DNA of 63,348 nt, filler included, from Trichosphaerium sp. ATCC 40318 (GCA_038496445.1; 4 parts of 4 records of this genome joined end to end with filler, not necessarily neighbours in it); one strand, 5' to 3'. Positions 1 to 23,145 are shown, counted from the first letter of the whole stretch. A program made the numbers and translations. The notes: generated from the letters alone by a model not told the origin.

Positions 1-262
1 GGAGGATCAGCAGCGGCATCTGGTTGAGGGTTGGGCTCATGTGGTGGAAGATTAGTAGTGGCATCTGGTTGAGGGTTGGGTTCATGAGGAGGATTAGCAG
101 TGGCATCTGGTTGAGGGTTGGGTTCATGAGGAGGATTAGCAGTGGCATCTGGTTGAGGGTTGGGTTCATGAGGAGGATTAGCAGTGGCATCTGGTTGAGG
201 GTTGGGTTCATGAGGAGGATTAGCAGCGGCATCTGGTTGAGGATTGGGTTCATGTGGTGGAC
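1..262. repeat. 42-bp tandem repeat, ~6 copies
   Basis: The unit ggaggattagcagtggcatctggttgagggttgggttcatga is directly repeated and is in frame with the minus-strand ORF. Confidence 0.95.
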
Positions 263-641: not shown

Positions 642-738
642 CGTTTTTGATGTGGGGAGTTTATCACGGTATCGTTCTCTTCTTCGTTTCCCAAAAAAAT
701 CAACTACAAAAAAAAAAAAGAGAGTTAGTTACAAAGTT

Positions 739-3211
739 TCAAACAGTATTTTGTGGTGACGTACGCATATTATTCTTGCCTCCCAAAGGATAAAATACAT
801 GATCTACAAAGCGAGCTACACTCACTAGGCTTACATTAGTGAAACTAGCCTCAAATCTTCCACTCCATATGCCCGTTGCAAACAACAAGTCCAAATTAAA
901 GCTTGCAGCATCTCGATACGCCCGTGAGCGAATTATTTCCATGCCTTGGTACGTCTCACCCAAACGAAACTCTTCCATAATGTTGTGTATCTGCGTGTAC
1001 AGTTAGGCCAAAAGAGAAAGATCGGTTTTGGGTTTGTTTAATCTACGTACATTGTCCAGTATGTGGTCACAACAGATAAATTTTCGTACAACAGCCCCTG
1101 CGTTTGACTTAACACGTCCTTGTCTAATTGCAAGCAACAGCTATAACCTTTATGAGTCCAACAAAGGGTGCAAAGGTTAAATAGAAACATACTTGGCTTG
1201 CAGCAATTGTGTTGTGACAGAACACTCTATTGGCAAATATCTTGTAGGGAAAGCCTGCCACCTTTACACCGTTTTCGAAAAGCTAAAAGAATGTCAGTCA
1301 ATGTCAATGAACGTCCATAACGTACAATGTCCAACTTTGCTTCATGCTCTTTAAACAAGGTGAGGTTTTGTATCACAAAAAAACACGATTTCATAAACAG
1401 CTTTATTCCCTGTGGTTTAAAGATCTTGGATGCCTGTGAAATACACACAACATGTTTCTTTAGCTATAAACATTTAAAAGACTAAAAATACCTAGAGTGA
1501 AACACTGTACATACCTCGTGCCAGCGTTTATCATCAAGCAGATATTTTGGCTTCCAGTCTCTCCAACGTGGACGTGGTACTGTTTTGCCTTCTGCTTGTT
1601 GCTCTTTGGTGTAGTCTGCATGTAACCTTCTGAACTTCTTCCACAGCCTTTGTACCTTAATGCTGTATGTGTAGGGAACTACACACAAATTAGCTTTGTA
1701 TAAAAGGGCAGCTCTTGTTAGTTCACCATACCGACTTGTTGCTGTATGTCGTTATCGTGTATAATCTTGTCTAGCGCATTATGGTAGCCAGTGTACGGAT
1801 TCAAGAAGGTGATGTTTTTCAGTACCACACCGTACGCTTTGCATTTAAGGCTAATACATCTTGTTTAGTAGGTATTTGAGAAGAAGGCTACGCACGCAAA
1901 GTCAGCCAAACAGCAGTGTGCCCCATCTCCCAGTATGAGTGCGTCTGTACCTTTAACTTTCACCCACATTGCAGTATACGCTTTGTCAATGAACGTGGAG
2001 TCTAATAAGCAAGTGAGTGTACACACTAATTGCAACAAAAGAACGTACCTGAATTACGAACAAAATTAACTTTCTGCAGAAAGTTTTTCAACGTGTAGTC
2101 TCTCACAGACAAAAAGCCAACCACATCAAAGAGATACCAAATCATATGCCGCATATATCTTTTGAGTTTTGGGGTTCTTGTTTTGTGTAAGGCGTAGTAA
2201 TCGTCTTTTTTCAACTCTTCAAAGCTTAATAAAGATGTTAGAACTAATTTTTATCTTTCAAATTAAAAACAATATGTTGTACGCCGGTATAATGGCCTTG
2301 TAATTCTGTAATGATTCCAATATCAGAGACATTTTATAATACTTTGTGGCAGCATATTGGTGTACAGGAGGAGTCAGTTGTTTGAGACAAAAGGCTCTAG
2401 CCAAGCGCCCTTTTTCAGCCAATATTCTGTATGTAAAAAACTTGGTGGTGCGCTCGTGAATGAAGGTCTCTGTCAAAACAGAAAGTTCGTCGTCCTTAAC
2501 ACGTTTCAAATTGATAACCTTGAACCAGTCGCGGTTGGGGTCTTGCAAAATGGTCAATGCATCGCTAAGAGTGGTTTGTTCCTAACATTAAATTAAAAAC
2601 AATAGCAATCAAAAAAATGTAGTGTAGAAATGAGAAATATTACTTATGTACGTACTGCTGTGCCAGCGTCATGGCCACGTAGCTCTTCCTGTACCTCTTC
2701 TGTCAAACGGTTACGTAATATTTCTTTTATCTCCACTGGGTCGCGCAATTTGCCGTATGCACCGTGCTGTGTAAGTTTTAGCTCTCTAAAGGTGAGTTAA
2801 CGTTAAAAATACAAAATCGAGGTTTTCAAAGGGCCAAGTTATACAAAACAACCACGTACTTGTAGAGCAAGTTTGTTTCTCCCTTCTTTGTTATCAAACT
2901 GTTCAAGTTTTCTGCATTCCAATGATTTAGCGTGTCCCCAGCCACAAACCTGCGTATGCGATAGTGGGTTTCCAAACAAGCTAATACAGGTAAAATACGT
3001 TAGTTTGTTAAAAAAAATAGACAAAACTAGACAACAGTGCAGTTTTTACGCCTGGCACGTTGTAAAAAGTTATAAAGTAGTGAAAAACTGACGCACGTGC
3101 GTTGCTGTCTATAATCCTCTCCTTATCTTGTTTGTACCAACTTGCTTCCAATGCAAGCCTACTAGCAAAGCACGGTACATCCATAGCATCTAGATTAACA
3201 ACCGTTGACAT
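739..3211 (-). CDS. Multi-exon hypothetical protein; C-terminal half homologous to the family at 14.9-22.6 kb (family member A)
   Basis: Chain of ORF-track exons separated by short GT-AG introns. The motifs VIQNLTLFKEH, LLLAIRQ and YRDAASFNLDLLFATG match VIQKDVDAFKQH, LFLAIRQ and YKAVTSFDLDLLFNRG in the downstream paralogues. Confidence 0.65.
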
Positions 3212-3479
3212 ATACCTCTTTATTTTTGAGTTAAGTCACCCTAGCACTCAGTACAAGAAGCAAAATTCCACATTTACCATTTCCTACCAATAAAAGCGCT
3301 TACATGTACCTTTAGCGCTGAAACCGAAAAAAGTGCTCACGTGAATTCACTTCAGTGAATACTAGCCTCGAAAACCGAACTTTTGCTAGCAGCGCTGAAT
3401 CTTTCTCAGGTACTTTGTTTTAGTCTTACGAACGTTTTTTAACCAGGTATACCATTCATAGAAAGTTAAAACGGTTACC

Positions 3480-5980
3480 ATGCCCTAAACACACTGCTTC
3501 CGTGCAAAAACGGTGTGAACATGTGGAGACAAAAATTTTTGCACACAGGGAAGCCACTTCGCTTTGTATTAAGTGAAAGCTTACCCAACACACCCAACGT
3601 GCCATACAGCGTACGCCTGTGTCGTTACCTCAAACTTTGCATTTGTTGATGGCACGTGGAAAATGTTTTTCACTGAACAGGTTTCTGGCTGGAGACGTGT
3701 TCAGTGAAACTGATATTGTGAAACTTGTGCTGCACAAAATTGCATGGTTGATGAGCGTGGCGCTACAAAACTGTTTTTGTTGTAACGCCACGCTCACCAA
3801 CCATGTTTTATTTTGTTTTTCAAGCTCATAAAGCTTGGTCAACAATATTAAGCACTACGTTGGACCTTAAAGCAACTATGAAGTGTGGTGAGCATGATTT
3901 ACAAGCAATTACAGCTTGTACCGCATATTTGCGGCGAAATGCGAAAAAACAGGTACAAACAAAGCTGAAACATCACGCAATGAGATGAAATCAACGCAAA
4001 GTGGTGAACCGGTACGTTGTAGCGCAATCCATCTTTTGTTGTCACTTGTGGTGGCAGTTTTGTACGTAACTAACCTTAGAATAGGCGCAGAAGCGCAAGG
4101 AGCAACAAACGGTACGTACTTTGTGCTAACAAGCAAATTTGTTTTTTTTTTGCTGATCTGCATTCGTTTGCATTGTATCCATCCTCTAATCACTAAATAG
4201 AAGCGTTTGCGATCATTGTGTTTAAGTTGATACCATCTTAACACAAACTTCATTACAAACACGGAGAACGCAACCACACACACCTTGGGGAGCTTAATCG
4301 AACAAGTACGTTGTTTTTGAGCGCGCGAGGGCGCAAATAGCGTATTGCAGCTCTAAACGCTCAACTTTAGCTAGAAAAAAGTGCTGTGACCTCGTCTTTG
4401 CATATTCCGACGAGTTTGCGTTTAAAGATGGCTGAAAACCCACCTGTACGATCAACGCGTTAGAAACCATCTCCTATTCATTCTTAACTCTTTTTTAGGC
4501 ATGCAAACGCCAAATGGGACTACAAAACTGTACGTAATTCTCTTTTCCGTTTTTATCGCTTTTACGGCGTCTACAACTCTAAAAAAAAGCAACAGCGCGA
4601 AAAAAACCAACGGTTAGTTTTTTATTTTGTGTTCGAAACAAACTGTACACCATTTCTTCTACTTTTTCATTTCAGCGCCTTCTTGGCCGTTTTCAACGCC
4701 TTTTTCATCAAATTTACACACAATAGGCTAAAAACGCTTATTTCTGTTTTAGATTTTACAGGCGTGAGTTTAATCGCTACACAAGACCCTGTAATCAACA
4801 GCGCCAACTCAATCGCAGAAAAAGATGCTTTGCTGTTGCCCATGGACATTGTACGATTAGAGGGCTTCATAACGTCCAGAGATGTCCTGTCCCCTGAAGA
4901 AAAACAGTAATACCTTTGCTACTGCCTTCACTCACTTGTTTAGGTTAATTGGCCCTTTTCATGGCAGTTCAGACCTAGTACTAGCTCACGAAGGTTCAAA
5001 GTTGTACGTACAGAGTTTTATTTTCCTTCTTCTTTTCTTGTTTACATGCGTTATTACAATTACACATTTCTGCTGTGCTTGCAGCTGTAGTTAGCGTGAC
5101 ATTGATTATCTCTCTGTTGCACGTTGCCTCACTGATTATTCTTTGGGGTTGAATCTACGCTGTGTTGCTTGTAATGGCTTGAGTGTTTTGTTTTCTCTCT
5201 TTTCTGCTTTTGAATTGCCTTTTGGATGTCACCCAACTACATTGAGCAGGACATTGATCATCTCTGTCCTGTGTTGTGCCCATTGATCATCCTCTGGGAC
5301 TGAACGTGTTCGTCTGTGGTGGCGTTGCATTGGATAATTCAATTCATTTTTCATTTCTCTTTTTTTTTTATCCTCCTTTCTTGCAACTACCCTTTGAGCG
5401 TCGCCCAAACAACTCTGAGCAAGACACTGATCATCTCTGTCCTGTGTTGTGCCCATTGATCATCCTCTGGGACTGAACGTGTTCGTTGTGGTGCCGTTGT
5501 AGAGTATTTTTCAAGTTGGCAACATCATTTCTTGTTTTATTTTGCGTTTTTCTTCTATTGTATTTCACCTACCGCTTTCTTATTTACTTTATAGTCCTCT
5601 GCAACAATTTAAAGACCAATTGGAAGCTATAAACCCCTCATCACCGACCTCACTGTTGAAAGCCATAAGCGACGTGTTTGATATGTTTGATGACACACGA
5701 GATATGCCTTTGGAAAGTGCAGTAATAGAAGAGTTGATGATACCGATGAAAGCAGAGCAAAAACAGTTAATACACCAAACATTGGTACGGTAGATGTATC
5801 TCCTGTAGCCACGGTGCTTATTGTTTGAGGTAGAGCCAACATTTGGACTTTTTATATGCCAATTACAACGCTTGCTACTACTCTCCTAGCCAACGTAAGC
5901 GCATGTTGGCGGCCTGTTTTCTTTTTTATCGGTATTGTTTCGATTTCTAAAGTGAATAGATAGATACTTACTGTATTTTT
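3480..5980 (+). CDS. Multi-exon hypothetical protein, possibly the 5' part of the UDG-fold gene
   Basis: Short open exons flanked by gtacgt...ag introns (e.g. FLAGDVFSETDIVKLVLHK, SLIATQDPVINSANS, PLQQFKDQLEAINP). No recognisable domain. Confidence 0.35.
5243..5499. repeat. ~85-bp direct repeat pair (5243-5327 and 5416-5499)
   Basis: tgagca(g/a)gaca(t/c)tgatcatctctgtcctgtgttgtgcccattgatcatcctctgggactgaacgtgttcg occurs twice. Confidence 0.9.
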
Positions 5981-5983
5981 AGC

Positions 5984-7307
5984 TTGTTGTATAAACCTGG
6001 CCTGACATCTAGACACAGAAGAAGTAGAAAAGTGAGAGAGAAAAAGAAGCAGCTTGCAGCTTGGGTACTGACAAACAGTGCATTCTATTCTTTATTAGGA
6101 CTTTTTGTGATAACACTACGCTTTAGAGCCATTTCCAAGCGGTGTATTTTTTACGTGTCAACTGCAGTTTGTGCAACGATTCCGCCAAAACGGTTCCCTT
6201 TGGCAACAAGGTGGCCGATAGCGTCTTTTTTAACAACCACTATCCCATATGCACTTACGGTTATGGCGATGAGGACAGTTACAGGCAAGCACCACGCCAT
6301 TCGTCAAACAGATGCTTACTTTTGGTAGCAAGTCCAAGTTGAAGATAATCACCGTTGGTTACAATGGCTCTCTAAGAGATAATCGCCTCAAAGGTGATTT
6401 AAAAAAGTTGCACAAAGGTTACGTGGACGACTCTAATGGCATCTCACTGGCAGCTGCTGCGGAGCTGAAGCGATTGGCCAACCACTACTTCGATGAGGTA
6501 CTAAAGAGATGCTGCAACACAACGCGTATACTAACACCTGTTACAAGCCATCACCGCCAAGTATGTATGGAAGGGAAAAACCCAAAAGGTACAGCACTTT
6601 GGGTCACTCCTATTACCGCCTTTACACCTTGGGTTTGGATCTGCTGAATTGCAGTTATGACACTGAGAAGGAAAACAGAGCGTTACACTTGGATTTGCTG
6701 TGTGCATACGCTACCAATCCTCACTGGGGCAAGGTCTCGGACGCTTGGAAGATGAGCGACAAATCCACGAAAGCCTGCAAAGCATTTCTTCAGAACAAAG
6801 GTGTGCTTGCTTTTCTTTTTTTTTTTGTTTTGTTTTATTTACCATTTCAATCACCAACCCCTCTTCAAGGAGCAAGAGAGTACCTGGCGCAGAGATTTCA
6901 CCCATTGGCAGTCAACAGGTTACGTCAATTGAACCCTCACGTAATGTTCACTGGCCTTCATGAACAATGGCTTAAATTATTGCCAGGCACTCCTGTCTAC
7001 AAATGGAAGCATTTGATCATGGTACTTGCACATTTTTGTGGCTTTAAACTGCGTGTATACCCAAAAAACTCATTCCATTTAGATCCAAAAAGAAGTGAAA
7101 TCTATACAAGTGCTTTGTACAGTGTTGCGCTGGCCCGTGCTTAGCGATCCCAACCAAAAGAAACAACACCACTGCATAGTGTTCAACATAGCGCCTTGTC
7201 AACAACCTTTTGGATGCATGAAGTACGAGCAAATACCTTTTCTAGTGCGAACATACTACAAGCCAGAGATTGAAAAGTTTTTAAAAGAGTACAACTATAC
7301 TAAATAA
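5984..7307 (+). CDS. Uracil-DNA glycosylase (UDG) superfamily-like domain protein, spliced
   Basis: The spliced product reads YPICTYGYGDEDSYSKSKLKIITVGYNGS...NHYFDE...LLNCSYDTEKENRALHLDLLCAYATNPHWGKV...LRQLNPHVMFTG. This follows the order of UDG-fold motifs (hhhhGxN; hDh...AT; LxPxhhhhG). Recognised from memory, not searched. Confidence 0.5.
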
Positions 7308-7813
7308 ATACATTTCCCCAAAAAAAGTGCTACTTTAGTTTTTTTAGCCTACAAAAGCTGCATAAGAGACGATCTATGACTTGAACACATTTATTTACTA
7401 CAGGTGACTATTTTACAGAGGCTACACCACGACACACAACTATTATGGAGCGTACGTATAACGATCAGCAAAAAAATTAACGGTTTTTTTTAAAATTATT
7501 TTCAAAAAACGATAAAACGCAATAATACCGTTTCGTACCGTATTAGCGCTACAAACCTTCTTTTTACCTTTTAAAATTATTAGTTTTTTGCCCCTTTTTT
7601 CTAAAAACATGTTTTTCTTTTCATTGTCCTGTTAAAAAGTGCACTTACTGGTGTTTACCTACAAGAGCGTGCTTAAGAGTCGTATGTACATACTAACAAC
7701 TTCTCCTTGTAGGTGATCCCCCACCAAATGTAAATTTCTCAAATCCTGGATCTTTGAGACTCGTCTTCAAAGTAATAGATGGTCATGTTACTGTATCCTT
7801 AGTAAAACACAAC

Positions 7814-8813
7814 ATGGCACAATTTTCCTATAGCGAATCTGGTATAGACGATTCACAAATGGACATAGATGACCCTGGCTCAGACTCAGACTCAGACTTT
7901 CGCTCAGACTCAGACTCAGACTCAGACTTTCGCTCAGACTCAGACTCAGACTTTCACTTTGACTCTGACTCAGACTCAGACTCAGAATCAGACTCAGACT
8001 CTGACTCAGACTCAGACTCAGACTTTCACTTTGACTCTGACTCAGACTCTGACTCTGACTCTGATTCTGACCGTGACTCTGACTCTGACTACGTACCGTC
8101 AGGTTCTACAACTTCGGACTATAGCCAACTTCATGGAGATGACTCCGACTCTGATGACACACCGTCAAGTTTTACAACGGTTTCGCCTATGTCTACAGCT
8201 ACACCAAGTACTACGTACGTTTGGTAAGACAGAACACTGTTCTTACTTTCTTGTCAGCACAGAAGATGCCAGCACAGAAGATATACAAGAACACCTGCGG
8301 AAAAAATTTGCAAATGCTCCAGAAGCGTACATCAAAGTTGACCCAGTGTTCCCTGGGTTTTATGAATTAATAGCTCATCTAACAAACGCTACCCCTACAC
8401 CTACACCTATAACAGATACTGCGCACGTTTGGTAAGACAGAACAATGTTCTTACTTTCTTGTAGTGGATCTGACAGTGCAGAAGATTCAGATGAACAGCA
8501 ACTTTCAAATGCTCCAGAAGCCTACATCCAAGTTGATTCTGACTCTGACGCCAATAAGACACCCTCAGGTGCTACAACGGTTTCACCACCTAGACAAAAC
8601 ACTACGCACGTTTGGTAAAACGGAACAATGTTCTCATTTTCTTGTAGTGGATCTGACGACGCTTCAAGCTTTGAAATTACAATTCTTCACTCAGGTGACG
8701 AAGCAGAACCAATGCAGGGACAAGACCATAGCCCTGACATTCAGTCACAGGAGGAGGAGGAGGAAGAAAAAGTAGTTGACTTCTCTGTATTTTTATATTC
8801 ACAATCAGAATAG
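7814..8813 (+). CDS. Ser/Asp-rich (SD-repeat) acidic low-complexity protein, 4 exons
   Basis: [28 protein letters not shown]... Three near-identical 42-43 nt phase-2 introns (8215-8257, 8423-8464, 8606-8647) keep the frame to the stop at 8813. Confidence 0.65.
7877..8090. repeat. (GACTCA/GACTCT)n hexamer repeat encoding Asp-Ser dipeptides
   Basis: Directly visible microsatellite. Confidence 0.95.
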
Positions 8814-8943
8814 AAGAAAAAAAAAAAAAGCTACACAACAATAAACTTTTTTTTAAAAATTAATTAGCTTTACTTTTTATTGGCATAGATTTACACTTAT
8901 CACATTGACCAACAGGTGAAGCTACCACAATCTATCACTCACT

Positions 8944-9891
8944 TTAAGCCCTATCATCTTCCTCCCAACACCTCTTACTCTTCCGTGCGCCTTTCTCGTA
9001 CTCGTCCTGCCTCTTTAAACGCCCACTTTCATACCACTCGGTGTACTTGCCATGTGGTCTACCGTAAGCGTACGCACACTGTGAAACCAGGTTGCCACCC
9101 TCATAACAAAATGACCATCCATGTCGCTTGTTGTACCGGTACTGTTTTATATATCGCAGCGTTTGGTCGTTGTTCCACTTTGTGACCAATCCGTGTTTGC
9201 AATCGGTAGAATGTTGCACAGACCTTGCACCTATTTTATTGATACAACCGTAGCATTTGGGTGAAATGGCATTTTCTAGCAAACTGGAGATCATCTTTCT
9301 GTTCATTGGGTGTGGAACAACAACTTCGCTATCTGTTGGACGATTGTATATCAGCTCTTCGCGCCCACCAAGATGGTTGAACAGGTGCAAAACCTTCACA
9401 TACATCTTACCACCATCTACACAGATTTTGTACGCGCAAGTGACTTCTTGTGACTTTATCTCATACATCTCTAGTTCAATGAGATAGCTGGTATCGTTCA
9501 TTGTTTCTGTTGGATACGTTACTCGGAAAGCGCTCAGCATTCGCCCTTTGTAGTAACTCACAGCCAGGTCCACACGCTTGAATCCATCGTAAGTTATACA
9601 ATCTCCATGCATTTGCCCATTTACAAAGTTGAATAGCCTACTCTCAGATCTCCACATGCCGTGCTTATTCCAGTTTTCGTCAAAGCGTAAAAAGGAAAGC
9701 TGGCTATCCAAAAGCGGCCACACTTCGTTCACTTTCAAGTCCAATTCCATTATCATCATCTTTAATTCTGTTGGCAAAGTCAGCAGTGTTCGAGCCTACA
9801 AAAGACGAAAAAACAAGGTAAGGATTCATAGCAAGCCAAAATCTCTCCATCTCACCTTGGTGTTGCCGCTAAACCTCTTTTTAGCTGCCAT
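8944..9891 (-). CDS. F-box-like motif + MORN-variant (MORN_2/YwqK-like) repeat protein
   Basis: MAAKKRFSGNTK, then a 60-nt intron (9796-9855), then ARTLLTLPTELKMMIMELD (F-box-like). Repeats such as HGKYTEWYESGRL and HGLVTKW follow. Confidence 0.75.
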
Positions 9892-10215
9892 CTGTGATGT
9901 TCAGTGTTATAGATGGGTGTTTATTAATTATAAACAATTGCTGCAACTAAGAATGATGTAATTCTTACATAGTTTTTTTGTAGATTTTCTGGATTGTACA
10001 TTGGAGTTTTATAGGAAAAGCCACGTGATAGTATGTTTTTTTTTTTCCTTTTAAGTCAACACTAATTCACCACAGTGTAGTTTTATTAACATATAATCGA
10101 TCGATTCTTGCGCTAGAAGGCTTCAGGTATGTAGTACTGGTATCTCCCTTCTTTTCTTTTACCTTTGCGCTTAATACCAGTAAATTAGACTTATATGTCG
10201 TTCTTTAGTTACATT

Positions 10216-13200
10216 ATGAGCAAAAAAGTATATCCCACAAGGCTGTGCCCCATGTGCCACAAAGAATTTTCAACACACAACTTTTCAGCACACTTGCATA
10301 CAAAAAGTCACCAGGCAAACGTTTTGGCGAAGCTGTGGGAAGTGCGCTCATCCAATAGAGAGCCACCGAACAAAAAAGCACGCACCAGCGATGATGTTGC
10401 TTACGATGAAGTGCTACATGCCAGTGAACAAGTTCAACAACAACAATTGATGCAAAATACCACAGAACCAGAACCTCAACCAGAACCTCAACCAGAACCT
10501 CAACCAGAACCTCAACCACAACCTCAACCACCGCTGCCATTAATGGAGCAAACATTCGTACAGTCAGACATGCTTTACGAAGCTGGTGATCTACTAATGG
10601 AAACGGAGACACAGTGTGTAGATAGGTGTTTAGCCGTTGGCAGGCCATTTCTCTCTATTAGCACTGCTTCATCAGAAGAGAAGGTCTTGTACCTTGCTAA
10701 AAAACTCCAATTGGAACAACAGCTGTCTAATGAAAACATGCAACTCTGGTTCAAATTTATATCGTCCGTGTCAACGCTTGTGGGAAACGCAGAAAACACA
10801 GAAGGTGAAAAGGCCTTCAATTATGAGCATTTGACAAACGACCGAGCCAACAAAGCCTTCAATCTGGTACTTCTCATGACCTCTTTTCCTCTTTTAGCTC
10901 ACTTGCTTTACCAGTACACTCCTACGATAGAGCTCAGCACCATGCACGTAAGGACCAGTGCCACAAAAACCAAAGAACTCTTATATGTGCAGCCGTCCCA
11001 GTATGTCAAGCTGCTCATGTCTCACCTGGTAGACAGAAATGCTATAAACGACACATCCAAGTATGGCTGCACTATACCTAGAGTGAATATGGACGGTGAG
11101 GAAGAGCAAATCCACGTGGTGGCCGGTCCAGAAACGGGAAAGCGCTATAAAGAACTTTTTGATGACGTTGAGAAGATAGAGGAAAACATCAGACTTGCAG
11201 GTACAACTTTTGTTGCAGTTTTTTTGTTCCCCTCCTCAAGCCAATGACCGTTGTGTAGCTTACCTGTGTCACGACAACTTCACTTACGATAAGAGAGACA
11301 GTCTAGGACCCTTGTATTTTGTTATATGGAACTTGCCTAACAGTGAAACAATGCAAGGGATAATGCCTTTGATGGTATTGCCGGCACAAGTGAACATGGA
11401 AGACGCTGCAAAGTATGTCGTTGACGATTTGAAATCGCTGTACAACGGCATAGAGTGTTACTCACAACCCTTGGAAAAGGTGAAAAGCACGTTTATTTCT
11501 TTCTTTTAACGACAAAATAGACTTTCAAAGTGTACGTCAGGTTGGAGAAGATATTGGGGGACATACCTGGAATATGCAAACTCTTGAGTACGGTCTTGTT
11601 ATTGTGTACTTTGCGTGCCATTCACCTCATTTTCTCAAAGGTATAAAGAACCACGCTTCGAAGATGCCTTGTAGAGTTTGCAAAGTATCCAGCAAGAACA
11701 TCAAACTAGGTATCATGGATGTTTGCGAGGATAGAAATATGACGGACACCAGAGTGTTGAAAGCTAGACTGAGTCAGGCGGAAGAGGAAAAGCTCAACAT
11801 CCTCTGTTTGAGAGCTTGGGTAATGGAACTTGTTTTTTGCCTCTGCAATTTATGCCCGTTTTCTTCTAAAGCTTGCATTTTAGAGTCCATTTTTGGATTT
11901 ACCTGGCTTTGACATCTACCATCACACCCCTTATTGTCCTTTTCACAATATCATTCTGGGAGTGTCTAAAGCTATGATCAGCGCCACTGTAGAACTGCTG
12001 CAACAGCGTATGGTAGATTACAAGAAAAAGTTGAGAGAAAAAGTAGCCTGGTACTTGCACCAAAAGCACGTGCACGTCATCAAGTAATGCAAACGGTTTG
12101 GTTGCTTTGCGCTCATGCGACTGTAGAACTAAGGACCTTTGGGACAGCCATGGAGAGCTTGATACTGAGCGTGGCTGGGATGGTACTGACTTCAAATCCT
12201 TTCTGCAGATGGCTTTGTTCGTTTTAAAACCGTATTGTACCAAGGACGAGATGTCCGTGTGGTGAGTGTAGTTTTTTGGGTTTTTTTGGCTGGAATGTTT
12301 GTGTGACCTTCTATTGAAGGAAAGTTTTCTTGGGTTATGTGGCCCTGATTTCTAAGGACTTTTTGCGTACAACGAGGTTGAACGAGTTCACGACCGAGGC
12401 TGCGAGGTTGTTGGACCTGATGCAAAAGCATTTGCCAGGTACCTGTCATTATTGTGGTGATTGGCTGCTATCTAACTCTATCTTCCATAGGAGCAAAAAC
12501 CTCTATACCCAACTTTCACGCGCTGTTTCACCACTCGAAACACGTCGAGATGTTTGGCATGCCCAAACACTACAGGTAACGGCATTCTGTTTGTTGGGTG
12601 CTGACTGGGTTTTTTTAAAGCACTTACGCTTGTGAATCCAGGCACAAAAGGATAAAGAACTGGAAGAACTCCACCAATGGCTTGCACAAAGAAAAGTGAG
12701 AAATATTAGGTCCGTGTTGAGCTGACGCCGATTGCTAGTGACATCATGAAGCGTGAGGCGGCTTTGTTTGCCTCTAATGTGGCTGCGGATCTGGCCACCT
12801 CATTGGTGAGTGTAGGAAAGCCACCTGCTGGTAGAAAAACGTACTTTGGACACGAGGTGACCGTGCCCAAGTTTTACAACATCCCACAGGCGTCTTGGAC
12901 TTTGCGTGAGCGCCCTATTCTCTCATTCTTTTGTTTGCTGATCTGTTTCACGCAGATAACGCTAAAAAAGTGCAACTCACAAAGCGACTGAGAGACATCT
13001 GGTTGAGGGACATTGCCCAGGAGCATCACAGACAACTGGATAGCAGCGTGGTGATGTATAAATCGGCCAAGTGCGAATCTAGAGAGATTGCTCTGTTTAC
13101 AAACACTGAGACTTGTTTCAAATCCTGGAGACCTATTCATGGTGAGGACAGAAGTAACTGCATTTATTTGGAGACGACCAACATTATAAGGATGAAAGAG

Positions 13201-13513
13201 GAAATTTACGTGTTTGGCAGGTAAAGTTGCTGTGCTTTTATTATAATCACATTGCTGCTGATAAATCTCTTTACAATGTAGGTTGTATAAACTGGTAAAT
13301 CAGATAGATAGGTATGACAAACTCACTGACTTGGTTATGTGCGTTGAGTGGTGTTTTCTTGGTTTTGTTGACATCAGTTGCAGGTTGGAGAGAGCTGGCG
13401 ACCTTGCTTGTGTACCTTTGAGCATGGTGTTTAGGCTTGCTTGTGTTGTGCCTGATCCTTGTGAACCTGAGCACTATTTGGATAACTACTATCAGCGTGC
13501 AATACCAAATTGA
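10216..13513 (+). mobile_element. CMC/EnSpm (CACTA/Plavaka-like) DDE transposase gene with N-terminal C2H2 zinc finger, multi-exon, apparently intact
   Basis: C2H2 finger CPMC...HLHTKSH. Catalytic-type motifs in order: YLCHDNF (D1), LGPLYFVIWNLP, VDDLKSLYNGI, ILGDIP (D2), PCRVC, LPGFDIYHHTPYCPFHNIILGVSK (C/DxxH), GTDFKSFLQM, PNFHALFH..HVEMFG, YACESRHK (E). Confidence 0.85.
10465..10530 (+). repeat. 12-bp tandem repeat encoding (EPQP)n linker in the transposase
   Basis: gaacctcaacca is repeated. Confidence 0.9.
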
Positions 13514-13579
13514 TGGCGATAGCTTTGTACATGATTACATGTAAGTTTAGAATAAAATTTCATGAGGCATGTTTTATTT

Positions 13580-13800
13580 GCCAAAAGTCGAATTCCATAT
13601 GAATTTATATTTTGACTTGGGGTTTTGTAAATGACCTATATTCTGATTCGATATGAAATCCACTAATCTGTGTATTTCCACAAGATTTCAGATAGAATTC
13701 ATCATGAATTCCATATTTGAAATTGGTACTGTTTGTCTTTCCAACGCCAGTATCACCAATAGTAATGACTTTGTACGATAGTTCTCTACAACTCAATGTA
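13580..13800 (-). pseudogene. Truncated Ras/Rab-family small GTPase fragment
   Basis: P-loop YKVITIGDTGVGKT, then an in-frame stop, then IHMEFDFW. The expected D-x-x-G (G3) and everything after it are missing. Confidence 0.5.
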
Positions 13801-14926
13801 AGCTATGGTAACAAGCCTAAAACCGAATGTACTGTTCTACATTCGACGTCTTAGTATTCGCTGGAGGGTTTGAAGGGGCTACAAATGCGTAAGTCAATCA
13901 ATTCATACACTTGATAGCCGCAAGGGTGGTGTACTGACTTACCTTTAATTTTTGTATCTTTGCTGCTTTTACTTCCCATTTATTTGATTTTAGTAAATCT
14001 TTGTTTTACGTTTCCAGTTTAAGATAATTGTTGGCTTGTTTAAGACAGGCTTCCAAAGAGTCCTCACTATTGGAGGCAAGAAGGCGCTCCTGTACATTAC
14101 AGGACAGTTTTATGATTTTCTGATACAAATTGGAAAAGCAGTTTTGTCTTCTAGCCCAAAGGCTAGTTTAACACGTGATTCAGAGGCGCAGTATTTTTTT
14201 TTGCACCATTTACCTTTGTAAAAATCGTTATCAAGGCTAGCGTGTGTATTGACATTTCTCTCGTCCGTTTTAATGTGCTGCTGTCGATTGTATCATCTAT
14301 TTTGGATTGATATTTATTACGGAATAACGAAATTGTTTGATAACAATAGCATCCTTCCTTCTCAAAGTGCAAACAAACAAGGACTACCATTAAATTGCAC
14401 TTATAATTTCCTGACAATGATCCTGATATATTCTTTTCAATGTGCACATCCAGATAAACTGAACAAAGTCAGAAAATGAAGTATTCCGTAATGTGAATCA
14501 AATGTATGTTATTAATAACCTGTAATGCTACTCAGAAGCGTTGTGAACACCGCCCTGCTTATAAGTTAACTTTATTCCACGTGATACTTGTATCAACCAC
14601 CAAACAAATTTTGACCAAGGCCATGTATGAGAACACTACCAACAGATGAAAAAAAAATACTGTGAACAAAAATGTAAGCCATTTGGCTGACTTTGTTTTG
14701 TTCCATTTGGCACGCAAATAGTTTTTGCTAAGCCATTAGCCGACAATCACAGGTATAGAATTAAAATTTATTACAGTAACTACACCTTGATGTGATTGCT
14801 GACAAGCGTTGATGTTTGATGTGATGCAATAAACTAATTTGATGAGCATGTAAGTACTACCAATGATGTACTTGGAAATGAAGCAGACTATTTTTTTCTT
14901 ATACTTATACTTGCGACATTTTTAGG

Positions 14927-16825
14927 TTACAGGCGATTCTGGTTTGCCTCTGGTAGTCGTTGAGTAGGCAGAGACGTAAAGGTTGGCAAGCTGGTTATTA
15001 TAGGTAGTGTTACTGGAGGAGCTTGTGGCTTCAATCCTGGTTGTTTTGCCGATTCAATAAATCCTGCTTGTAGCAATTCTGTTTGGTTTCTGGTCAGAGA
15101 AGGTGCTGTTACGCTTGGTTTTAATCGGGAAGGAATTGTTGGAGTATCTATCTTTGATTTGTTAGTTGGTTTGTCCTGTATATACAGGGCTACTGTATCT
15201 ATAGGTATTGAAACAAGCAGGTTTGGTGCATCAGCTATTTTTCGGTGTTTCTTGTTCGTTGTGGGTTGAGTAGTTGTATTATCCACTCTTTTCCTTTTGA
15301 GTGTTGGAAGTGCGTATTGGGTGTCAATGGCAGATAGTTCGTTTCTAATACGTTTCAGTTCTTCTTGATCTTTCTTATACGCAGCCATGCGCTGAAAAAT
15401 AGGACTACACTTGTGTTCTGTATGAACTCGAAATGTTTCTTTTGTTTCTTTGTCAACGCATTTGTCCTCACCGTCTTCATTGTGCTGGTTTAATGATTTG
15501 CTTTCATTGCCTATGGTATCAATTACTATGAGTGTTTGGAACAATGGTACAAATGAGAAAGGTTTCAAAGAATTATAGGATTGAAGAAAAAATGTGAGAA
15601 AAATAAGTTAATTGTCATTATTATTGTTCGTCTCACCTTTTGCATAGTCTTCCTTGTGACTGTCTAGATTATTTTGTAGTTCTTTTATTATAGAATCAGC
15701 TACAGGTATTTTATTCTTGCGTCTAGCAGTTTTGAGTGCTTTTGAGTACAAGTTGGCCAGTTGCATTGCTATTATATGTTAGTCGTAAGAGGCACCCTTA
15801 AAATAAACTCACATACCCAAATCGAATCGTGTTGGGTACATCTCTAAAAGCATTGCTTGAGCAGTGTACCCACAATGCATACAATTCCAATAGTATTTTG
15901 AGTAATTGATCTCCAGCCCATAGATGGTATCTTCAAATACACCTTTATTGAATAAAAGATCTAATTATAATTAAAATTCATCACAGCGTTGTAAATGCTT
16001 AGATCTCCCACGTGATCAGGTTTTTTGAACTCAAGACCGTTCTTTGATAAAAACTGTTTCAGCTAATTTTTTTGTTAGAAGCATTGTTTGTTATTTTCCT
16101 TTACCTTTTCCTGTACTTTGTAGGCATTAGAAAACATAGAAACGTGACTCTTTGCCCCAAAATTGTGCGAGAAAAAACGTTGGCGCATGGCCAAAAAGAG
16201 CTTGGAACAGGAACAATTATTCAAGAGAACAAGAAGATAATGAAAATAACATACTTGGTTTCTTGCCTTTTTGTTTTCTATGAAAACCATCGTACTATAT
16301 ATATACTTCAGTTCTGTGACCTAATACTTCACCCCCAACTCGTTCCATCTAATTTGTAATCAGTAAAAGATAGCAAGCCTCAGTAACACAACGCAGCATC
16401 ACGCTCGTAGGAACTAGTAAAAAAAGCATACTTCCTTTATGGCTGACAAATGCTGTTTAAACGCATCCACATCTTTCTGTATTACAATGTATGTTTTAAA
16501 ATACTCCTTGGCGTGTATATCAGAATGTACCTAGATTCCCTTTATTACACTCAGTGGCGAGCTGCTTCCATTCAGTTGCGGATAAAAAATCACGTGGAAT
16601 GAACTTTGTAACAGACTTTAGATCAATCTTGTGCTGTCGCGGTTTTGAGTGGTGTAACTTTAAGGCTTTATGAGCAAACTCGGTGATCTCTTCTAAAAGT
16701 CTACTTCATCTAAAACTCAAAATAAGACAGAAAGCACAAAAGAAAACAAAAAGCTAGCCTGAAAGTTCGCGTGACGACCCATCCGAGGCACACAAACTTC
16801 CATTCGATTCTCTCTCAATATCCAT
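14927..16825 (-). pseudogene. Unknown family member B; inverted, disrupted duplicate of the gene at 20415
   Basis: Near-identical stretches to 20415-22430 (RMAAYKKDQEELKRIRN; KGVFEDTIYGLEINYSKYYW). It has an indel/stop near 16690 and a 5-nt insertion near 15965. Confidence 0.7.
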
Positions 16826-17626
16826 TGTGGCTTTACTGTTTTTTGTCTGAGAGCAAGTTTGGAACAAGTGTACTTGGTTTGTCTGTATCGTATTAATTCA
16901 AGTTGTTACGCCTGAATATGAGTGAGTCAGTTTAAAATAGCGTACAATATCGAAATTACGTAAATCTCATTCGTACCTCTTTTGTTTGTTCCACAGTAGT
17001 TAATAAATTTAATGTGGTGCTGGTCGCAAAGATAATTACATGGTTTTTCTTATTAAATATGAAATGTCGCTTAACAACTCACGTTTACAATAAAACGTGT
17101 ATCTACACCAGGCCATGCAATTGTACTTATTACCTATAAAAACGAGGAGGTCATATGTGGTAGCAATCACGTGATTTATTTGACATGATTGGTCAACTTA
17201 CTGCAGTGACACAATCTTTTTAGAAATGACATTCTGGTATCTTTTTCTGAAAAACATTTTGTGTTTTGTAGCGTTGGCAGTAACGACAATAATCACGTGG
17301 TGCCTCTACCAATCAAAAAGGTTTTCAAATCGGAGCTTGCAACAGTCGCTTTTTGCCGTGCCTATTTTATGATGACTTAGCCATATTGAGTAATAGTTGA
17401 ACACTCTTGCAGGGCATGGATCGGTTGTTTAGTACAGGATGATTGCCTTTAAGTTGAGTTAAAATTTTTGCGTTTTTATAAAAACTACTATAATAACACG
17501 TGGTACCATCTCATCGCATCTAGCTACATAGTTTGTGTTCAGTAGAAACTAAACAATAAACGGTAGTGCAACAGATTCATTCAACGACGCTACTGTGCAC
17601 TTACCTGGTACTAGGCCTATTAAATA

Positions 17627-20013
17627 ATGGACAACAACAACAAAAACAGCAATAAAAACGTACACCAATCAGTTTTTTTTCTTTTTTTCTTCATATTAAT
17701 GCTGTTCAGGATGTAGATCACGTGATTCCATTACCAAGCCGCCAGTGTTGGATGATCAAAGTGCGTTTTAAATTTTAAACGAGTACAGTTTCCCTGGACT
17801 AAGTGTTTGGCCTTCTGTTCGCGAAACTGGGCTACAGCGTGTTGTATTTCGTAGAAACACGTGTGTTTTGGCGCCATTTGTCCGACATTTCCATTAAACA
17901 GCTCCTTCAAGTTGAGCTATAACTCTATAATTGTGAACGCTCAAAACAGTTCTAACCTTTTTTACAGGCAATGACCAGTTGTTTAACGAAGTTATGGCTT
18001 TTGCTAAAAAGGCCATAAAGATGCACAATTCGAAACCCAGGAATCCCCAGATTAACCTAAATGATGCCACACAATTCAAAGCATGTGAGTATTTATCAAA
18101 GGGAGAATGGAAAGAGCTTGTTAACAGTGATAACAAACTAAGTAAAAAAACTGAAAGACGAAGGTAAAATTTTTGATTTGTTTTGGTTTGGATTGTTCTT
18201 ATTTAACCTTACACGAAAATGAACTTAGTATACGAGATGCTGCAAATATGGTTAAAATGTATATCGTAATACAAAAAGATCTACAAGGGTTTAAAAAGCA
18301 CCTGAAAGAACTGAATGCAGTACACTTTTTTTTGTTATCACAGTGATATGGACACATTGCTTATGATTTTAGACTCGAACAAAAAGGGGAAACAAAGTAC
18401 CAGGACACTTTTTGAGAACCTATTCTGCAGCAGTCTTTATGAAAAATGATACAGCGAGAAAGCAGGTAGTGTTGGGTTTTTTTTTAATGTTTTACAAATT
18501 TATTTGTTTTTTAAGTTACTCGTTGCTCTCTGTAGATGCTTGTTCTCAGGGATAAATGCCCGCAATGGCGGAATGTTTTCCAATGCTCAAATGGCACAAG
18601 ATAAGGTACAGATAAGGAGGTTTTAAGTAGTGTCTTCAAAGGTATTGACGAAAAAATTAGTTGAAAGAGTTTTTGCACATGAACGGCCTTGTATTCAAAG
18701 AGCCTGAACAATTCAAGCCAGATAGCATATACAAGGCTGTTACAAGCTTCGATTTAGATCTGTTATTCAATAGAGGTGGCTTTAAAGACACTGTGTATGC
18801 GTTGGAGATATACGACACGAGAGTGTCTTGGAAGTCGTTACATTGTGGGTACATTGTTCAAGAAATGCTACTAGAAATGTACCCAACGCGATTTGATTTA
18901 GGTACTAGCCTCACGTGTTTTTTTCCCATCTTGTTTGCCTCATCTAAATAAACGTAGCAAAGCAGTTGCTTGAACATTACAAAAAAGCACTGAGTGTAAC
19001 GGATTGCAACAAAATGAAGACAGCTATCTTAACAAAAGAAAAACTACTAGCGCATGCGAAACATCAAGCAGAAGACTATGCTCAAAGAGAAAAAATGTAT
19101 ATAGCGAAAAAATCAATCAAACGAGAGAAGGAAATACAACAGGAGGGTAAGAACCGTGGTGACACAGAAGTTACACTAAATAGGAGATCATACATTGGTT
19201 TTTTTCCCTCTTTTCTTTCTTGATCCAGAAAACAAAACTAACAAGTTGTAGATCCTATGGACTGTGAAGATTCTAGAATAGGTGATCCAATATTGAGTCC
19301 TCCTGTTATTAAAGACAATCAAACTGTTCATGCTTGTTTTGAGTGGCTTAAACAAAATACAGGTAGTTAGTTTTTTTTTGTTCTTAAATGACTTCTAATA
19401 ATGGTTTGCAGTCATGGGTGAAATTTACAACTCTAAGAACCTGCAACAAAGTAATGAACAAGGAGAAGATCATGATGATTCAAGAATGAATGATTTGGAA
19501 CCTGAGCAAAATGTCTCTGAAGAAAAAAATGCAGAAAAGTCAGACCAAGACATTGTGATAAGAAAAAGAAAATCAAGAGTTACGGCAACTACAAGTACCA
19601 AGAAACAGCGAAAAAAACCACCATTGCGGTATACATTTGATGTAAATCACAAGGCCGCTGTACAAATTAAAACAGAAACGCCAGACACAGTACCAATTGC
19701 ATTCCTCGCAAAAGAGCAGTTGCCATCAACTCAACCAACAAATAATGACTTTGGCAATGGTACCTGGGATATATTGTTATTCTTTATGAATAATATCTCT
19801 GTAGATGGTTTACCCGACAATTTTGAAGAACTAGACACGGATTATATAATGGTAGTTCGTTTTAGTAAGTCATTCTTCTTTAATCACTGTTTTTTTATTA
19901 AAAAGTTGGATTAGGAGGCAAAAGCTATTTCAAGACACCAGCAACTAAGAAGTTTATTAAAGAAAAAGATCTACCGAATGTCAGGATCTAGAGACAAAAA
20001 GATTTATCAGTGA
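17627..20013 (+). CDS. Unknown family member C, multi-exon
   Basis: Exons EVMAFAKKAIKMH..EYLSKGEWKEL, MYIVIQKDLQGFKKH, SFDLDLLFNRGGFKDTVYALEI..SLHCGY..LLEMYPTRFDL, with a basic NLS-like stretch RKRKSR. Confidence 0.75.
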
Positions 20014-20414
20014 TAGCAATCGATCATGTCAAGTAAATCACGTGATTGTTATATAAACGTGGACTTCCCATCACTTTTCTTGAGCTTGCTATATCCGGTT
20101 ATCACCTTGCGTATGTTTGCTAATTTTTCCACTTTTGTCACGTGATCACTGTGTTTTAAATACAAGTTGTTAAGCGACAAATTGACAAGAATAAAACATT
20201 TCATAACGTTTACTCAGCGCATCACCTATTATTAAGCTATTATCTCTCTGCTGTAAGGTACACATGAGATTTATCTAATAGCAACACTGTACGCTATTAT
20301 AACTCACTCACTCAGTCAAATTCAGGCGTTACAAGTTAATAATTAAGAGGATACAGCAAACTGTCATATAGGAAAAAACCGTTGGTGTGAATTCTCAAAC
20401 AAAGTTAAAAGACA

Positions 20415-22635
20415 ATGGATACGGAAAGTTCGCGATCTCCTGATGAGTCGTCATGCGAATCTAAAGGCAAGTAACTGGTTTTTCTTTTGTGCGTGCTTAA
20501 GTGTTTGTGAGTGGTTTTAGGCGAAGCAGACTTTTTTGAGGACGTAATTGAGTTTGGTCGAAAAGCCATAAAGCTACACCACTCGAAACCGCGACAACAT
20601 AAGATTGATCTAAAATCCGCTACGATATTCCCAAGAGAATACTTGTCATCACGTGAGTGGAGGGACCTTGCCTCTGCATGTAATAAAAGAAAAAAATCCG
20701 GGTAAGTACAAACTGCTTGGGTTCTTACTTGCTAAATGGTTGCTAGTAAACCTAACAAGAACGACGCCAAGGAGTATTTTAAAACATATATTGTAATACA
20801 GAAAGATGTGGATGCGTTTAAACAGCATTTGTCCGCCATAAAGGAGGTAGGCTTTTTTGTTAAGCCATTACCAAAAAATCTTGCTAGTTTTATGGAGCCA
20901 CCCTCACTTCACGCTTACTGTTTTAGATGGAAAGTGATGGTAGTATATTTTACGGTCACAGTACTGAAGTTTATAGTAAGGCAGTTTTCTTGGCTAACAA
21001 GAAAGCAAGAAACCAAGTAAGTGCATTCTTTTATTTTTAGTGTTTTTGGGTATAATGTTTTATTAAAGTTGTTCTTGGCCATACGTCAAAGATTATTCTC
21101 AAAAGGTAATAGACGATGCAATAGCTCAATGTTTACAAACGCCCAAAACATACAAGACAAGGTACTGAAAAGTCATATAGCAACCCAGTTTGTAATTGAC
21201 AAAAAATTAGCTGAAACAGTTCTTAACTTCGAACGGTCTTGAATTCAAAAAACCTGATCACGTGGGAGATCTAAGCATTTACAACGCTGTCATGAACTTT
21301 GATTTAGATCTTTTATTCAACAAAGGTGTATTTGAAGATACTATCTATGGGCTGGAGATCAATTACTCAAAATACTATTGGAAGTCGTTACATTGTGGGT
21401 ACACTGTTCAAGCAATGTTACTGGAAATGTATCCAACACGATTTGATTTAGGAACTTTGTATTTTTCTTGTTCCTCGTTTGTTTTTTTTTGGCACTTACA
21501 AGTAATAGCAACGCAATTACTCGACATGTATACAGACGCATTGAAAACTGCCAAAACCAAGAATAAGTCAGCTGCTTTGATAATAAAAGAACTACAAGAT
21601 AATCTGGAAAGTCACAAGAAAGACTACACGCGAGGCAACGTGAAGAATACTGAACGAGCAATTACACCAAAAGGTAACTTGGTTTTTCTCACTTTTTTCT
21701 TCATATACGCATTTATAATATTTCCTAACACTCATAGTACCTTACTTCAGATATGAATCTGAATCATTAAGCCCACATGATGTTGAAGAAAGTGAGGACA
21801 AAAGTGTTGATAAGGATGCGAAAGAAATCATTTGTATTCACACAGAACCCAACTGGTACTATTTCTGAGCGCATGGCTGCGTACAAGAAAGATCAAGAAG
21901 AATTGAAACGTATAAGAAACAAACTGTCTGCCATTGATACCCAAGACACACTTCCAAAACTCAAAAGGAAAAGAGTGGTTAATACAACTACTCAATCAAC
22001 AATCAACAAGAAACAAAAAAGAGCACCGAAAATAGATATGCCTGCTACTTCAACGAATATTGTTGATTCAATGCAAGTTGATACAACACTAGCTCCTCAC
22101 ACAACTAACCAAGAGACCAACATAATAGACCTACCAGCAATGCCTCCCTTGATACAACCAAAAATTCCTCAAACAGTAAACAAATCAGCAAGATTTGAGC
22201 CAATGTTGCTTCCAAAATCACAAAATAAGACACCATTGCCTCCACTCACTTTGCCAACATTATCACCTCCGAGCATTCAACAAGTAATACCAGAACCAGA
22301 ATCACGTGTGACAGAAATACAACAAATGACAGAAGTACAACAAATTTCCTTAACAACCTTAAATGATGATAGCTCAAGTGAAGGTACAACATTTAGTATT
22401 ACACGCTTACTATACCTAATAAGTCTATAAAGAATTACCTGAAGACTTTAAGGATATTGGAGAAGATTATGTGATGATTGTTAGTTTCAGTAAGCAGCTA
22501 CTACTCTAGGACTAATCCATTGAACCATATTTTGAAAAACTGAAACTAAAACTTTGTTCAGGAGGCAAGTACTATAAACAAACGTCAAAAACTGGAAAGT
22601 ACATTGAAGAATGCATTAATCTGGACAAATGATGG
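20415..22635 (+). CDS. Unknown family member D, multi-exon
   Basis: Same exon and motif series as member C (NFDLDLLFNKGVF..SLHCGY..LLEMYPTRFDL). Has KLKRKR and a Pro/Thr-rich tail. 3' end approximate. Confidence 0.75.
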
Positions 22636-23145
22636 TAAACCACTGGACATGTTGTATTTACATTGTACTTAATATTAAGTATTGTGACTGTCACAAAGAA
22701 TTGCTTATAAAACCTTCAGTTTATTAATATTGAATTACTATCTCGTTATGCAAACACAAATTGGTTGGTCTACGGAATTGACCCGCTGGAGTAAGTTTAA
22801 CTGGTAATCTCAATTTTGGCACATTGTGGCCACAACCGTAGCTTCAGAAGACTGTTTGTATATCGAGATGCAAAAGAGACACTGTCTTCAGCGTGTGCTG
22901 CGTTTGAACTTTACCGTAAATCCTGGTAACCAAAAATATGAGTTAACATGATGCATCACATGTTTTGTATGGAACTTCAACACTTTGTAGGCACTCAATG
23001 TAGGTCATGGAGTTGACCCGGATTAGATAGAGAAAGAAGAGACGAGCAAAACAATTTATTGTTTGTGAAGAGCTAATGAGCTATTCCTCCCATACCACAC
23101 CATTTCTCTCATAATAACAGGATCAATTTCCTGGGCGTTATCACA

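Follow-up and report, generated by a model that had tools for sequence, protein, structure and literature searches.

How much of the DNA around a spliced DDE transposase gene on contig C448 of Trichosphaerium sp. ATCC 40318 (GCA_038496445.1) belongs to one mobile unit, and what kind of unit is it? An earlier interpretation made without database searches (the sequence-only reading) had proposed a single large, cargo-carrying transposon of the CMC/Plavaka type over positions 739 to 22635. The window analyzed here is the whole of contig C448, 23,145 bp of a 70.3-Mb assembly in 642 contigs, and copies and boundaries were defined by BLAST comparison with the other contigs of the same assembly. Our results make it likely that the left part of the window belongs to element A, an autonomous DNA transposon of the cut-and-paste kind, 17.9 kb long, that is bounded by terminal inverted repeats (TIRs), carries additional genes, is of the CMCT (EnSpm/CACTA-Mirage-Chapaev-Transib-Plavaka) type, and lies inside a Ras-family gene, and that the right part, segment B, is separate from it.

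The window splits sharply at 13731/13732 into these two units. Unit A (1-13731) recurs at C412:15106-25601 with 99.99% identity (one mismatch in 10,497 bp) and at C165:839-14347 with 97.7 to 99.3% identity. In C165, identity ends exactly at 13731; the sequence beyond its A copy is unrelated, and C165 and C448 diverge wholly after the right TIR. Segment B (13732-23145) recurs at about 98% identity in C181:610-10150, C271:43422-52651, and C379, all of which run on leftwards past the junction without A, into sequence absent from the window. Copies of A and copies of B were never found together outside the window. The GC content is 41.5% in 1-13731 versus 36.2% in 13732-23145, with the surrounding genome at about 36 to 37.5%, and the step falls exactly at the right end of element A (13731/13732). 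The GC-richer left region of about 13.5 kb that had been noted by eye was thus borne out; the span from 739 to 22635 as a single unit was not, since the element ends at 13731 and 13732-23145 is a separate segment. Gene structure in the window is eukaryotic, with GT..AG introns of 41 to 66 nt, one of them with a TACTAAC branch site. An exact look-up of six open reading frames (ORFs) of the window in a collection of 15 billion proteins found none of them, and tRNA and Rfam scans were empty.

The boundary features of element A in the window are as follows.

1..13731, plus strand: right part of transposon A, 13.7 kb, with near-identical copies on C412 and C165 and a shared left boundary
13710..13731, minus strand: right TIR of 22 bp, matching the left end perfectly in inverted orientation (5'-CAG...CTG-3' termini)
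13590..13711, no strand: right subterminal GAATTC-centered repeats, 3 sites (from the repeated motif and the site count)
13731..13802, minus strand: P-loop exon of a small GTPase of the Ras family, truncated by the insertion just after GDTGVGKTN (from translation and the intact site in C181, C271, and C379)

The left end lies outside the window, as the sequence-only reading had guessed. It is found at C412:10918, 4,187 bp to the left of window base 1, which gives element A a total (composite) length of 17,919 bp. This boundary is abrupt and common to C412, C560, and two arms on C184, and their flanks are all different. TIRs, which had escaped the first inspection, do exist: they are perfect over 22 bp (CAGTACCAATTTCAAATATGGA; CAGTACC...GGTACTG, a CA..TG-type terminus). 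The 22-mer has seven perfect occurrences in the 70-Mb genome, every one at a copy boundary; as a control, the reversed 22-mer pattern gave one match at up to 3 mismatches. A facing pair of TIRs 277 bp apart (C286:17717-17993, with 1 and 2 mismatches) is probably a miniature nonautonomous derivative. GAATTC sites are concentrated near the ends: 14 of the 16 in the 17.9-kb element are subterminal (up to 450 bp from the left end and up to 141 bp from the right end), and the left end has 11 GAATTC-centered sites within 450 bp, inside repeated motifs. These clusters are subterminal repeats of the kind known from CACTA elements. The interior of A is not composed of other high-copy repeats.

Element A has been inserted into three unrelated targets. 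In the window, the right TIR abuts minus-strand sequence encoding ...KVITIGDTGVGKTN, and Pfam recognizes the intact exons of C181 as Ras (54.7 and 26 bits). Because intact Ras exons exist elsewhere, with the uninterrupted (empty) site present in C181, C271, and C379, and the TIR abuts the truncated one, the window copy sits in the exon that encodes the P loop of a Ras-family GTPase. The left end on C412 interrupts a 1,504-amino-acid (aa) ORF (C412:6454-10917) with aspartyl-protease and RVT_1 domains, the pol gene of a long terminal repeat retrotransposon, and the right end on C165 cuts a DDE_3 (Tc1-like) transposase ORF (C165:14333-17150). The C448 and C165 copies differ by about 60 substitutions in 13.7 kb, and these, with the indels, fall mostly at 3 to 5 kb; all tested ORFs that are fully covered by the C165 alignment are intact in C165. 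Three unrelated targets, about 60 substitutions, and identical or nearly identical ORFs together point to recent transposition, and A is apparently still mobile. Where both flanks are available, they carry short duplications: AT/AT around a derivative on C184, and TA/TA and TAA/TAA around two copies of a sister family, A2 (on C84 and C270, respectively; described below). Alignment of the copies, which had been proposed as a check, therefore yielded sharp boundaries, 22-bp TIRs, and, in some copies, flank duplications of 2 to 3 bp that are likely to be target site duplications (TSDs). The proposal of a large cargo-carrying transposon stands in that the element is bounded by TIRs, was recently mobile, and carries extra genes; its right end lies at 13731 and not near 22.6 kb.

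Several further observations concern the copies and their surroundings. C184:6791-19938 is a 13.1-kb rearranged A derivative with two inverted "left" ends (arms 6791-10369 and 19938-15438, 99% identity); the third left end, at 14488, has a copy of the same flank in front of it, and the outer flanks are AT/AT. C448, C412, and C165 all break within element A, C448 starting in a 42-bp tandem repeat that is coding; the assembly was broken there by near-identical 18-kb repeats. Diverged copies (71 to 81%) of the pol ORF at the C412 insertion site lie on C255, C322, C187, C120, and other contigs. Downstream in the right flank on C165 is a 525-aa F-box and leucine-rich-repeat gene and, further on, a reprolysin-like metalloprotease fragment.

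The transposase gene of element A was read from the DNA.

10195..13513, plus strand: transposase gene, about 13 exons, about 930 aa, with a C2H2-like zinc finger and a PEPQ repeat
11243..11479, same gene: D1
11521..11589, same gene: D2
11640..11819, same gene: C(2)C
11884..12084, same gene: C(2)H
12493..12576, same gene: H(3)H
12619..12696, same gene: E

Its exons contain no stops and are separated by GT..AG introns of 41 to 66 nt. The motifs are CHDNF (first D) together with NLP, LGDIPG (second D), PCRVC (CxxC), CPFHN (CxxH), FHALFHH (H-x3-H), and STYACES (E); by analogy, the D, D, and E of these motifs would be the catalytic residues. Exon 1 encodes an N-terminal C2H2-like finger, with weak Pfam matches only, followed by the PEPQ repeat. 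The exons are 97.6 to 100% identical in the C165 copy, and paralogues were found on at least 10 contigs. All motifs and exon boundaries are kept in three diverged lineages (A2 on C270 and C84, a second lineage on C84, and one on C445) at 30 to 77% exon identity; CHD(D/N)F, LGD(I/M)PG, and STYxCES are invariant across the four lineages, and PCRVC and H-x3-HH are conserved in all of them. The description of a spliced transposase with intact D-D-E, CxxC, and CxxH motifs was therefore correct, its exons being open and its motifs retained in four lineages.

The CMCT clade of DDE transposons comprises EnSpm/CACTA, Mirage, Chapaev, Transib, and Plavaka as well as ESTA and Lanisha (Kojima 2025, PMC12730594), and its traits are a D, D, E triad in conserved context, C(2)C and H(3)H motifs, 5'-CA..TG-3' termini with inverted repeats, and TSDs of 2 to 5 bp (PMC12730594). 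Element A shows the triad, the CxxC and H-x3-H motifs, and CA..TG termini with TIRs; significant similarity to known members was not found in searches with single exons. From this combination we infer that the transposase is a very divergent CMCT member. It probably works like, and belongs to, the CMCT group but not Plavaka proper. Of the earlier CMC/Plavaka assignment, the CMC/CMCT motif architecture is thus retained, and Plavaka proper is not, given the lack of PF18759 and PF02992 matches, the different termini, and the absence of TET/JBP among the ORFs scanned.

Two observations adjoin the transposase. A 12-bp tandem repeat at 10466-10530 encodes the (PEPQ)n tract of exon 1. At the start of contig C445 (1-7517), another transposase lineage forms a tail-to-tail pair of inverted copies (1-3381 versus 7517-4138, 99.97%); a MORN-like ORF was not detected there within the 20 kb read.

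Comparison with the sister family shows which other genes accompany the transposase. A2 is 7.9 kb long (C270:18952-26874), and its copy on C84 is 99.9% identical, with a 1.45-kb (1,455-bp) internal inversion. The A2 TIRs are 13 bp long; the terminal 11 bp, CAGTACCAATT, are common to A and A2, and A2 is bounded alike at two loci. A and A2 share three genes in tblastn and tblastx comparisons: the transposase, a MORN-like ORF, and ORF-L. The second of these lies within the window.

8947..9795, minus strand: MORN-repeat gene, conserved transposase companion (sharing 32% identity with the A2 ORF on C270 and C84 across about 280 aa)

The orientation of the MORN ORF is opposite in A2. Against Pfam MORN_2 (cutoff, 29.6 bits), the window ORF scores 17.6 bits and its A2 orthologue 38.9 bits, and an AlphaFold2 model built from a two-sequence alignment (pLDDT 39.6 overall) contains beta-hairpin repeats at residues 210 to 278 (pLDDT 55 to 78), the rest being of low confidence. 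A word-index search with the A2 MORN ORF returned 1 weak match. The N terminus has an LPxEL...L-type, F-box-like pattern by eye only, and an F-box (PF00646/PF12937) was not detected in the window ORF or the A2 orthologue at E values up to 0.1 to 1. For the MORN half (PF07661/PF02493) of the earlier "F-box/MORN" label, the Pfam score is thus above threshold in A2 and below it here, and the F-box half went undetected by Pfam. ORF-L is a multiexon minus-strand gene to the left of the window, at -3339 to about -1433 in A, with no domain match in domain scans. Conserved between the families at about 32% protein identity, the two nontransposase genes (MORN and ORF-L) are real parts of the family. 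At C84:149745-160359, an A2 copy directly adjoins a 5'-truncated copy of a third lineage, with a CAGTAC-type terminus at local position 15359, an arrangement that looks like nested insertion among family members.

A mechanism can be proposed on this basis. The transposase would bind the inverted repeats and excise and reinsert the element, generating target duplications of 2 to 3 bp. ORF-L, the MORN protein, or both might act like the TnpA-type accessory factors of CACTA elements, for example on subterminal repeats or on host factors. The approximately 11 kb of DNA unique to A, made up of the PHEPNPQ-repeat gene, the three-exon ORF of 225 aa, and the serine/aspartate (SD)-repeat ORFs, would then be a passenger acquired after the split from A2.

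The passenger region lies between ORF-L and the MORN gene, is specific to A, and is absent from A2. It includes the following features.

1..1002, minus strand: A-specific gene with an exon (742-1002) carrying an LDLLF-like motif; no Pfam match, and motif-only similarity to a family in segment B
6312..7144, plus strand: A-specific three-exon ORF of about 225 aa, the "UDG-like" gene of the sequence-only reading; splice sites include a TACTAAC branch site
7697..8810, plus strand: A-specific serine/aspartate-rich repeat ORFs (including 7697-8224), with partial paralogues on C595 and C87 at 78 to 90% DNA identity

The first gene also contains a 589-aa ORF on the same strand, running from 728 down to -1038, whose PHEPNPQPDATANP (PHEPNPQ) repeats correspond to the 42-bp tandem repeat at 1-261. 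ORFs at 1 to 5.9 kb are poorly defined. The serine/aspartate-repeat ORF that had been described is present, at 7697-8224 and following. There is about an even chance that the approximately 11 kb is a passive load of host gene fragments, acquired by Pack-type transduplication and without a function for the element, and not functional cargo. The A-specific ORFs are absent from A2, the scans of these ORFs returned no recognizable domain (nor any TET/JBP domain in the ORFs scanned), and the SD-repeat ORFs have their partial paralogues at C595 and C87, all in favor of captured fragments, as are the loss of 1.8 kb of the region (717-2515) in the derivative C560 and the position of most substitutions and indels between copies at 3 to 5 kb. 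Functional cargo is favored by the clean splice signals of the three-exon ORF and by the state of the ORFs fully covered in C165 (the three-exon ORF, the LDLLF-motif exon, and 2261-2581), which are open and identical there, though in copies of such young age this is no sign of selection.

The three-exon ORF had been assigned a glycosylase fold and proposed as DNA-base-processing (UDG-fold) cargo. This claim found no footing in any of the analyses applied. The ORF has no Pfam match, no word-search homologue, and no Atlas match; canonical UDG motifs (GQDPY, GE[AG]PG, or GINPG, and the HPSP type), searched in all frames, were absent, the only resemblance being FHPLA. In a PDB sequence search, exons 2 and 3 matched nothing even at an E value of 10, and exon 1 matched one non-UDG chain at an E value of 0.59. 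An AlphaFold2 single-sequence model of exons 2 and 3 reached a pLDDT of 39 and is unusable for fold comparison. The UDG identity is thus unsupported, though not formally excluded. At 6600-6720, the same ORF contains two LDLL-type tetrapeptides (in LGLDLLN and LHLDLLC) that recall the LDLLF motif, probably by chance.

Several points weigh against the reading of A as a mobile CMCT-type transposon. Its length of 17.9 kb was pieced together from C412 on the left and C448 on the right across their 10.5-kb overlap. The full-size copies have no matching flanks (left AGA and CAT; right TTT and AAG), so the assembled ends either belong to separate copies or reflect recombination among copies; a target duplication of 2 to 3 bp is likely. 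Pfam scans of each transposase exon, here and in the three paralogous lineages, identified no family, and no exon matched PF02992 (Transposase_21/Tnp2) or PF18759 (Plavaka). Genome-wide profile searches with PF02992 and PF18759 found nothing, but control genomes were silent too. When exon 1 was compared by HMMER with 1.84 billion proteins, all matches were low-complexity ones to the PEPQ repeat; a word-indexed protein search with an exon-2 profile was blank, and an exon-2 profile run against the PDB brought up neither a RAG1 nor a Transib chain. As no match was significant, the superfamily assignment rests on the motifs, the termini, and a subthreshold Atlas lead.

These negative results bear most directly on the alternative that A is a real TIR transposon whose transposase represents a new superfamily-level lineage, or another DDE superfamily, outside CMCT/Plavaka. 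We regard this as unlikely, though worth keeping in view. It would account for the absence of exon matches to Pfam Transposase_21 and Plavaka and to RAG1 and Transib in the PDB, for the failure of HMMER to find relatives of exon 1, and for CAGTAC termini unlike those of EnSpm (CAC..GTG) and PlavakaA/B (PMC12730594). However, every transposase search was run exon by exon, and single short exons are insensitive queries; the same holds for the proposed Plavaka/Transposase_21 profile check, which gave no match by Pfam on single exons. The motifs D, D, C(2)C, C(2)H, H(3)H, and E fit CMCT in their order and spacing, as do the GxP...YxCE(S/R) sequence that follows H(3)H, the CA..TG termini, and the flank duplications of 2 to 3 bp. 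For the C-terminal half of exon 1, the nearest named Atlas clusters are all Plavaka (0.87 and 0.86), Transposase_21, or RAG1; these values are below the 0.9 level and count as a lead only. A bolder extension of the CMCT assignment, drawn by analogy with other transposon cargo, is a long shot: the element might represent a CMCT lineage not described before, in which the MORN (possibly F-box) protein and ORF-L would form a new accessory module, acting for example through ubiquitin-ligase recruitment against a silencing factor, and the A-specific genes would be functional cargo.

Segment B holds the features listed here.

13732..23145, no strand: segment B, an AT-richer, host-like repeated segment outside the transposon, with copies on C181, C271, and C379
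14927..16075, minus strand: LDLLF-family paralogue 1
18661..19914, plus strand: LDLLF-family paralogue 2
21262..22430, plus strand: LDLLF-family paralogue 3

In C181, segment B belongs to a larger structure, about 16.7 kb long, whose inverted arms exceed 2.5 kb and each contain a Ras-family gene. C181, C271, and C379 share flanks on both sides, from which it follows that B is no transposon but a host-like locus that was either assembled repeatedly or duplicated recently. The candidate interpretation of B as a long-TIR transposon was rejected on these shared flanks and the Ras genes in the arms, and position 13732 was rejected as an end of B since the other B copies continue leftwards in local BLAST. 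The assembly holds three to four near-identical versions (96.9 to 99.6%) of the B inverted-repeat locus with shared flanks, which suggests uncollapsed haplotypes or a very recent segmental duplication and calls for caution on copy counts. Paralogues 1 and 3 form an inverted duplication (15246-16978 versus 22015-20256, 70 to 77% identity). In a genome-wide protein search, the LDLLF family was found only in B copies; the A exon at 742-1002 (minus strand) matches it over only 16 to 18 residues (pairwise E values, 4e-4 and 2e-3). The announced four-copy novel family thus reduces to three clear paralogues in 13732-23145 and a fourth, in A, that shares only those few residues. Its proposed role as an accessory protein falls away, with its three clear members outside the element and none in the sister family. 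The predicted recurrence of UDG-like, SD-repeat, and LDLLF genes beside transposase copies did not hold for A2, from which all three are absent.

A single Plavaka/CMC element of at least 22 kb over 739-22635, with UDG-fold cargo and a four-copy LDLLF accessory family, is on this evidence very improbable. Parts of it are sound: the transposase motifs are real, the element is large with extra ORFs, and one A exon has an LDLLF-like motif. However, the right TIR lies at 13710-13731, with divergence of C165 and C448 after it; C181, C271, and C379 contain the right-hand 9.4 kb but not the element, and their Ras exon is unbroken; the clear LDLLF paralogues are confined to B, and A2 does without the UDG-like, SD-repeat, and LDLLF genes; and UDG identity is unsupported by every available test, with no Plavaka match in Pfam. 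That A is immobile, a segmental duplication or one locus assembled repeatedly as haplotigs with incidental inverted termini, can be dismissed as hardly credible even with redundant contigs in the assembly (C181, C271, and C379 sharing both flanks; C412 and C448 overlapping at 99.99%) and only two right and few left A ends assembled, since copy identity stops exactly at the perfect 22-bp TIR at both ends, unrelated flanks interrupt three different ORFs, the empty site of the Ras insertion is known, A2 shares the terminal 11 bp and has the same boundaries at two loci, and a 277-bp end pair exists on C286.

Should the assignment of A to the CMCT group hold, Trichosphaerium harbors a young, probably active family of 18-kb DNA transposons with exactly defined ends. 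Its transposase would be too divergent for current profile libraries and would extend the known diversity of the CMCT group, and its conserved companions would be unlike both the TnpA of CACTA elements and the TET/JBP cargo of fungal elements. With autonomous copies, deletion derivatives, a sister family, and both the empty and the filled Ras site, it would offer a natural case for the uptake and retention of passenger genes. For annotation, the genes at 1-13731 are transposon-borne, and the Ras-family gene copy at 13732 is disrupted.

Among known systems, EnSpm/CACTA elements resemble A as large cut-and-paste TIR elements with CA...TG termini, clustered subterminal repeats, several genes (the transposase and one or more other conserved ORFs), and the ability to carry extra DNA, and in the short (2 to 3 bp) flank duplications seen where both flanks are available. 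In contrast to their termini (CAC..GTG in EnSpm, PMC12730594; CACTA), those of A read CAGTAC. The exons of A are without detectable Pfam Transposase_21, DUF4218, or Transpos_assoc, its companions (the MORN protein and ORF-L) are unrelated to TnpA, and its host has fungal-type short introns.

Plavaka termini are TGT..ACA in PlavakaA and CATCA..TGATG in PlavakaB, the latter with TSDs of 2 or 3 bp (PMC12730594). Some Plavaka elements carry an extra TET/JBP gene, and TET/JBP-carrying fungal DNA transposons include KDZ, Plavaka, EnSpm, ESTA, and others (PMC12730594). Element A is like the PlavakaA and PlavakaB elements of Agaricomycotina in motif architecture; its nearest Atlas clusters carry PF18759, and its 2- to 3-bp duplications may match. 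It differs in having no PF18759 match, CAGTAC..GTACTG termini, and different cargo, without TET/JBP in the ORFs scanned.

DNA transposons of fungi that carry TET/JBP were reportedly described by Iyer et al. in 2014, and such cargo may counter methylation or host silencing. Like them, A is a DNA transposon that comobilizes a nontransposase gene that might counter silencing; unlike them, its conserved passenger is a MORN-repeat protein, and no DNA-modifying enzyme has been demonstrated in it. Plant CACTA and Pack-type elements capture genes. The ORFs of A, unlike theirs, appear complete and spliced and are not obvious fragments, and the resemblance to these gene-capturing elements lies in the overall design: an autonomous, A2-like backbone enlarged by about 11 kb of additional ORFs, some of which have paralogues at other sites in the genome.

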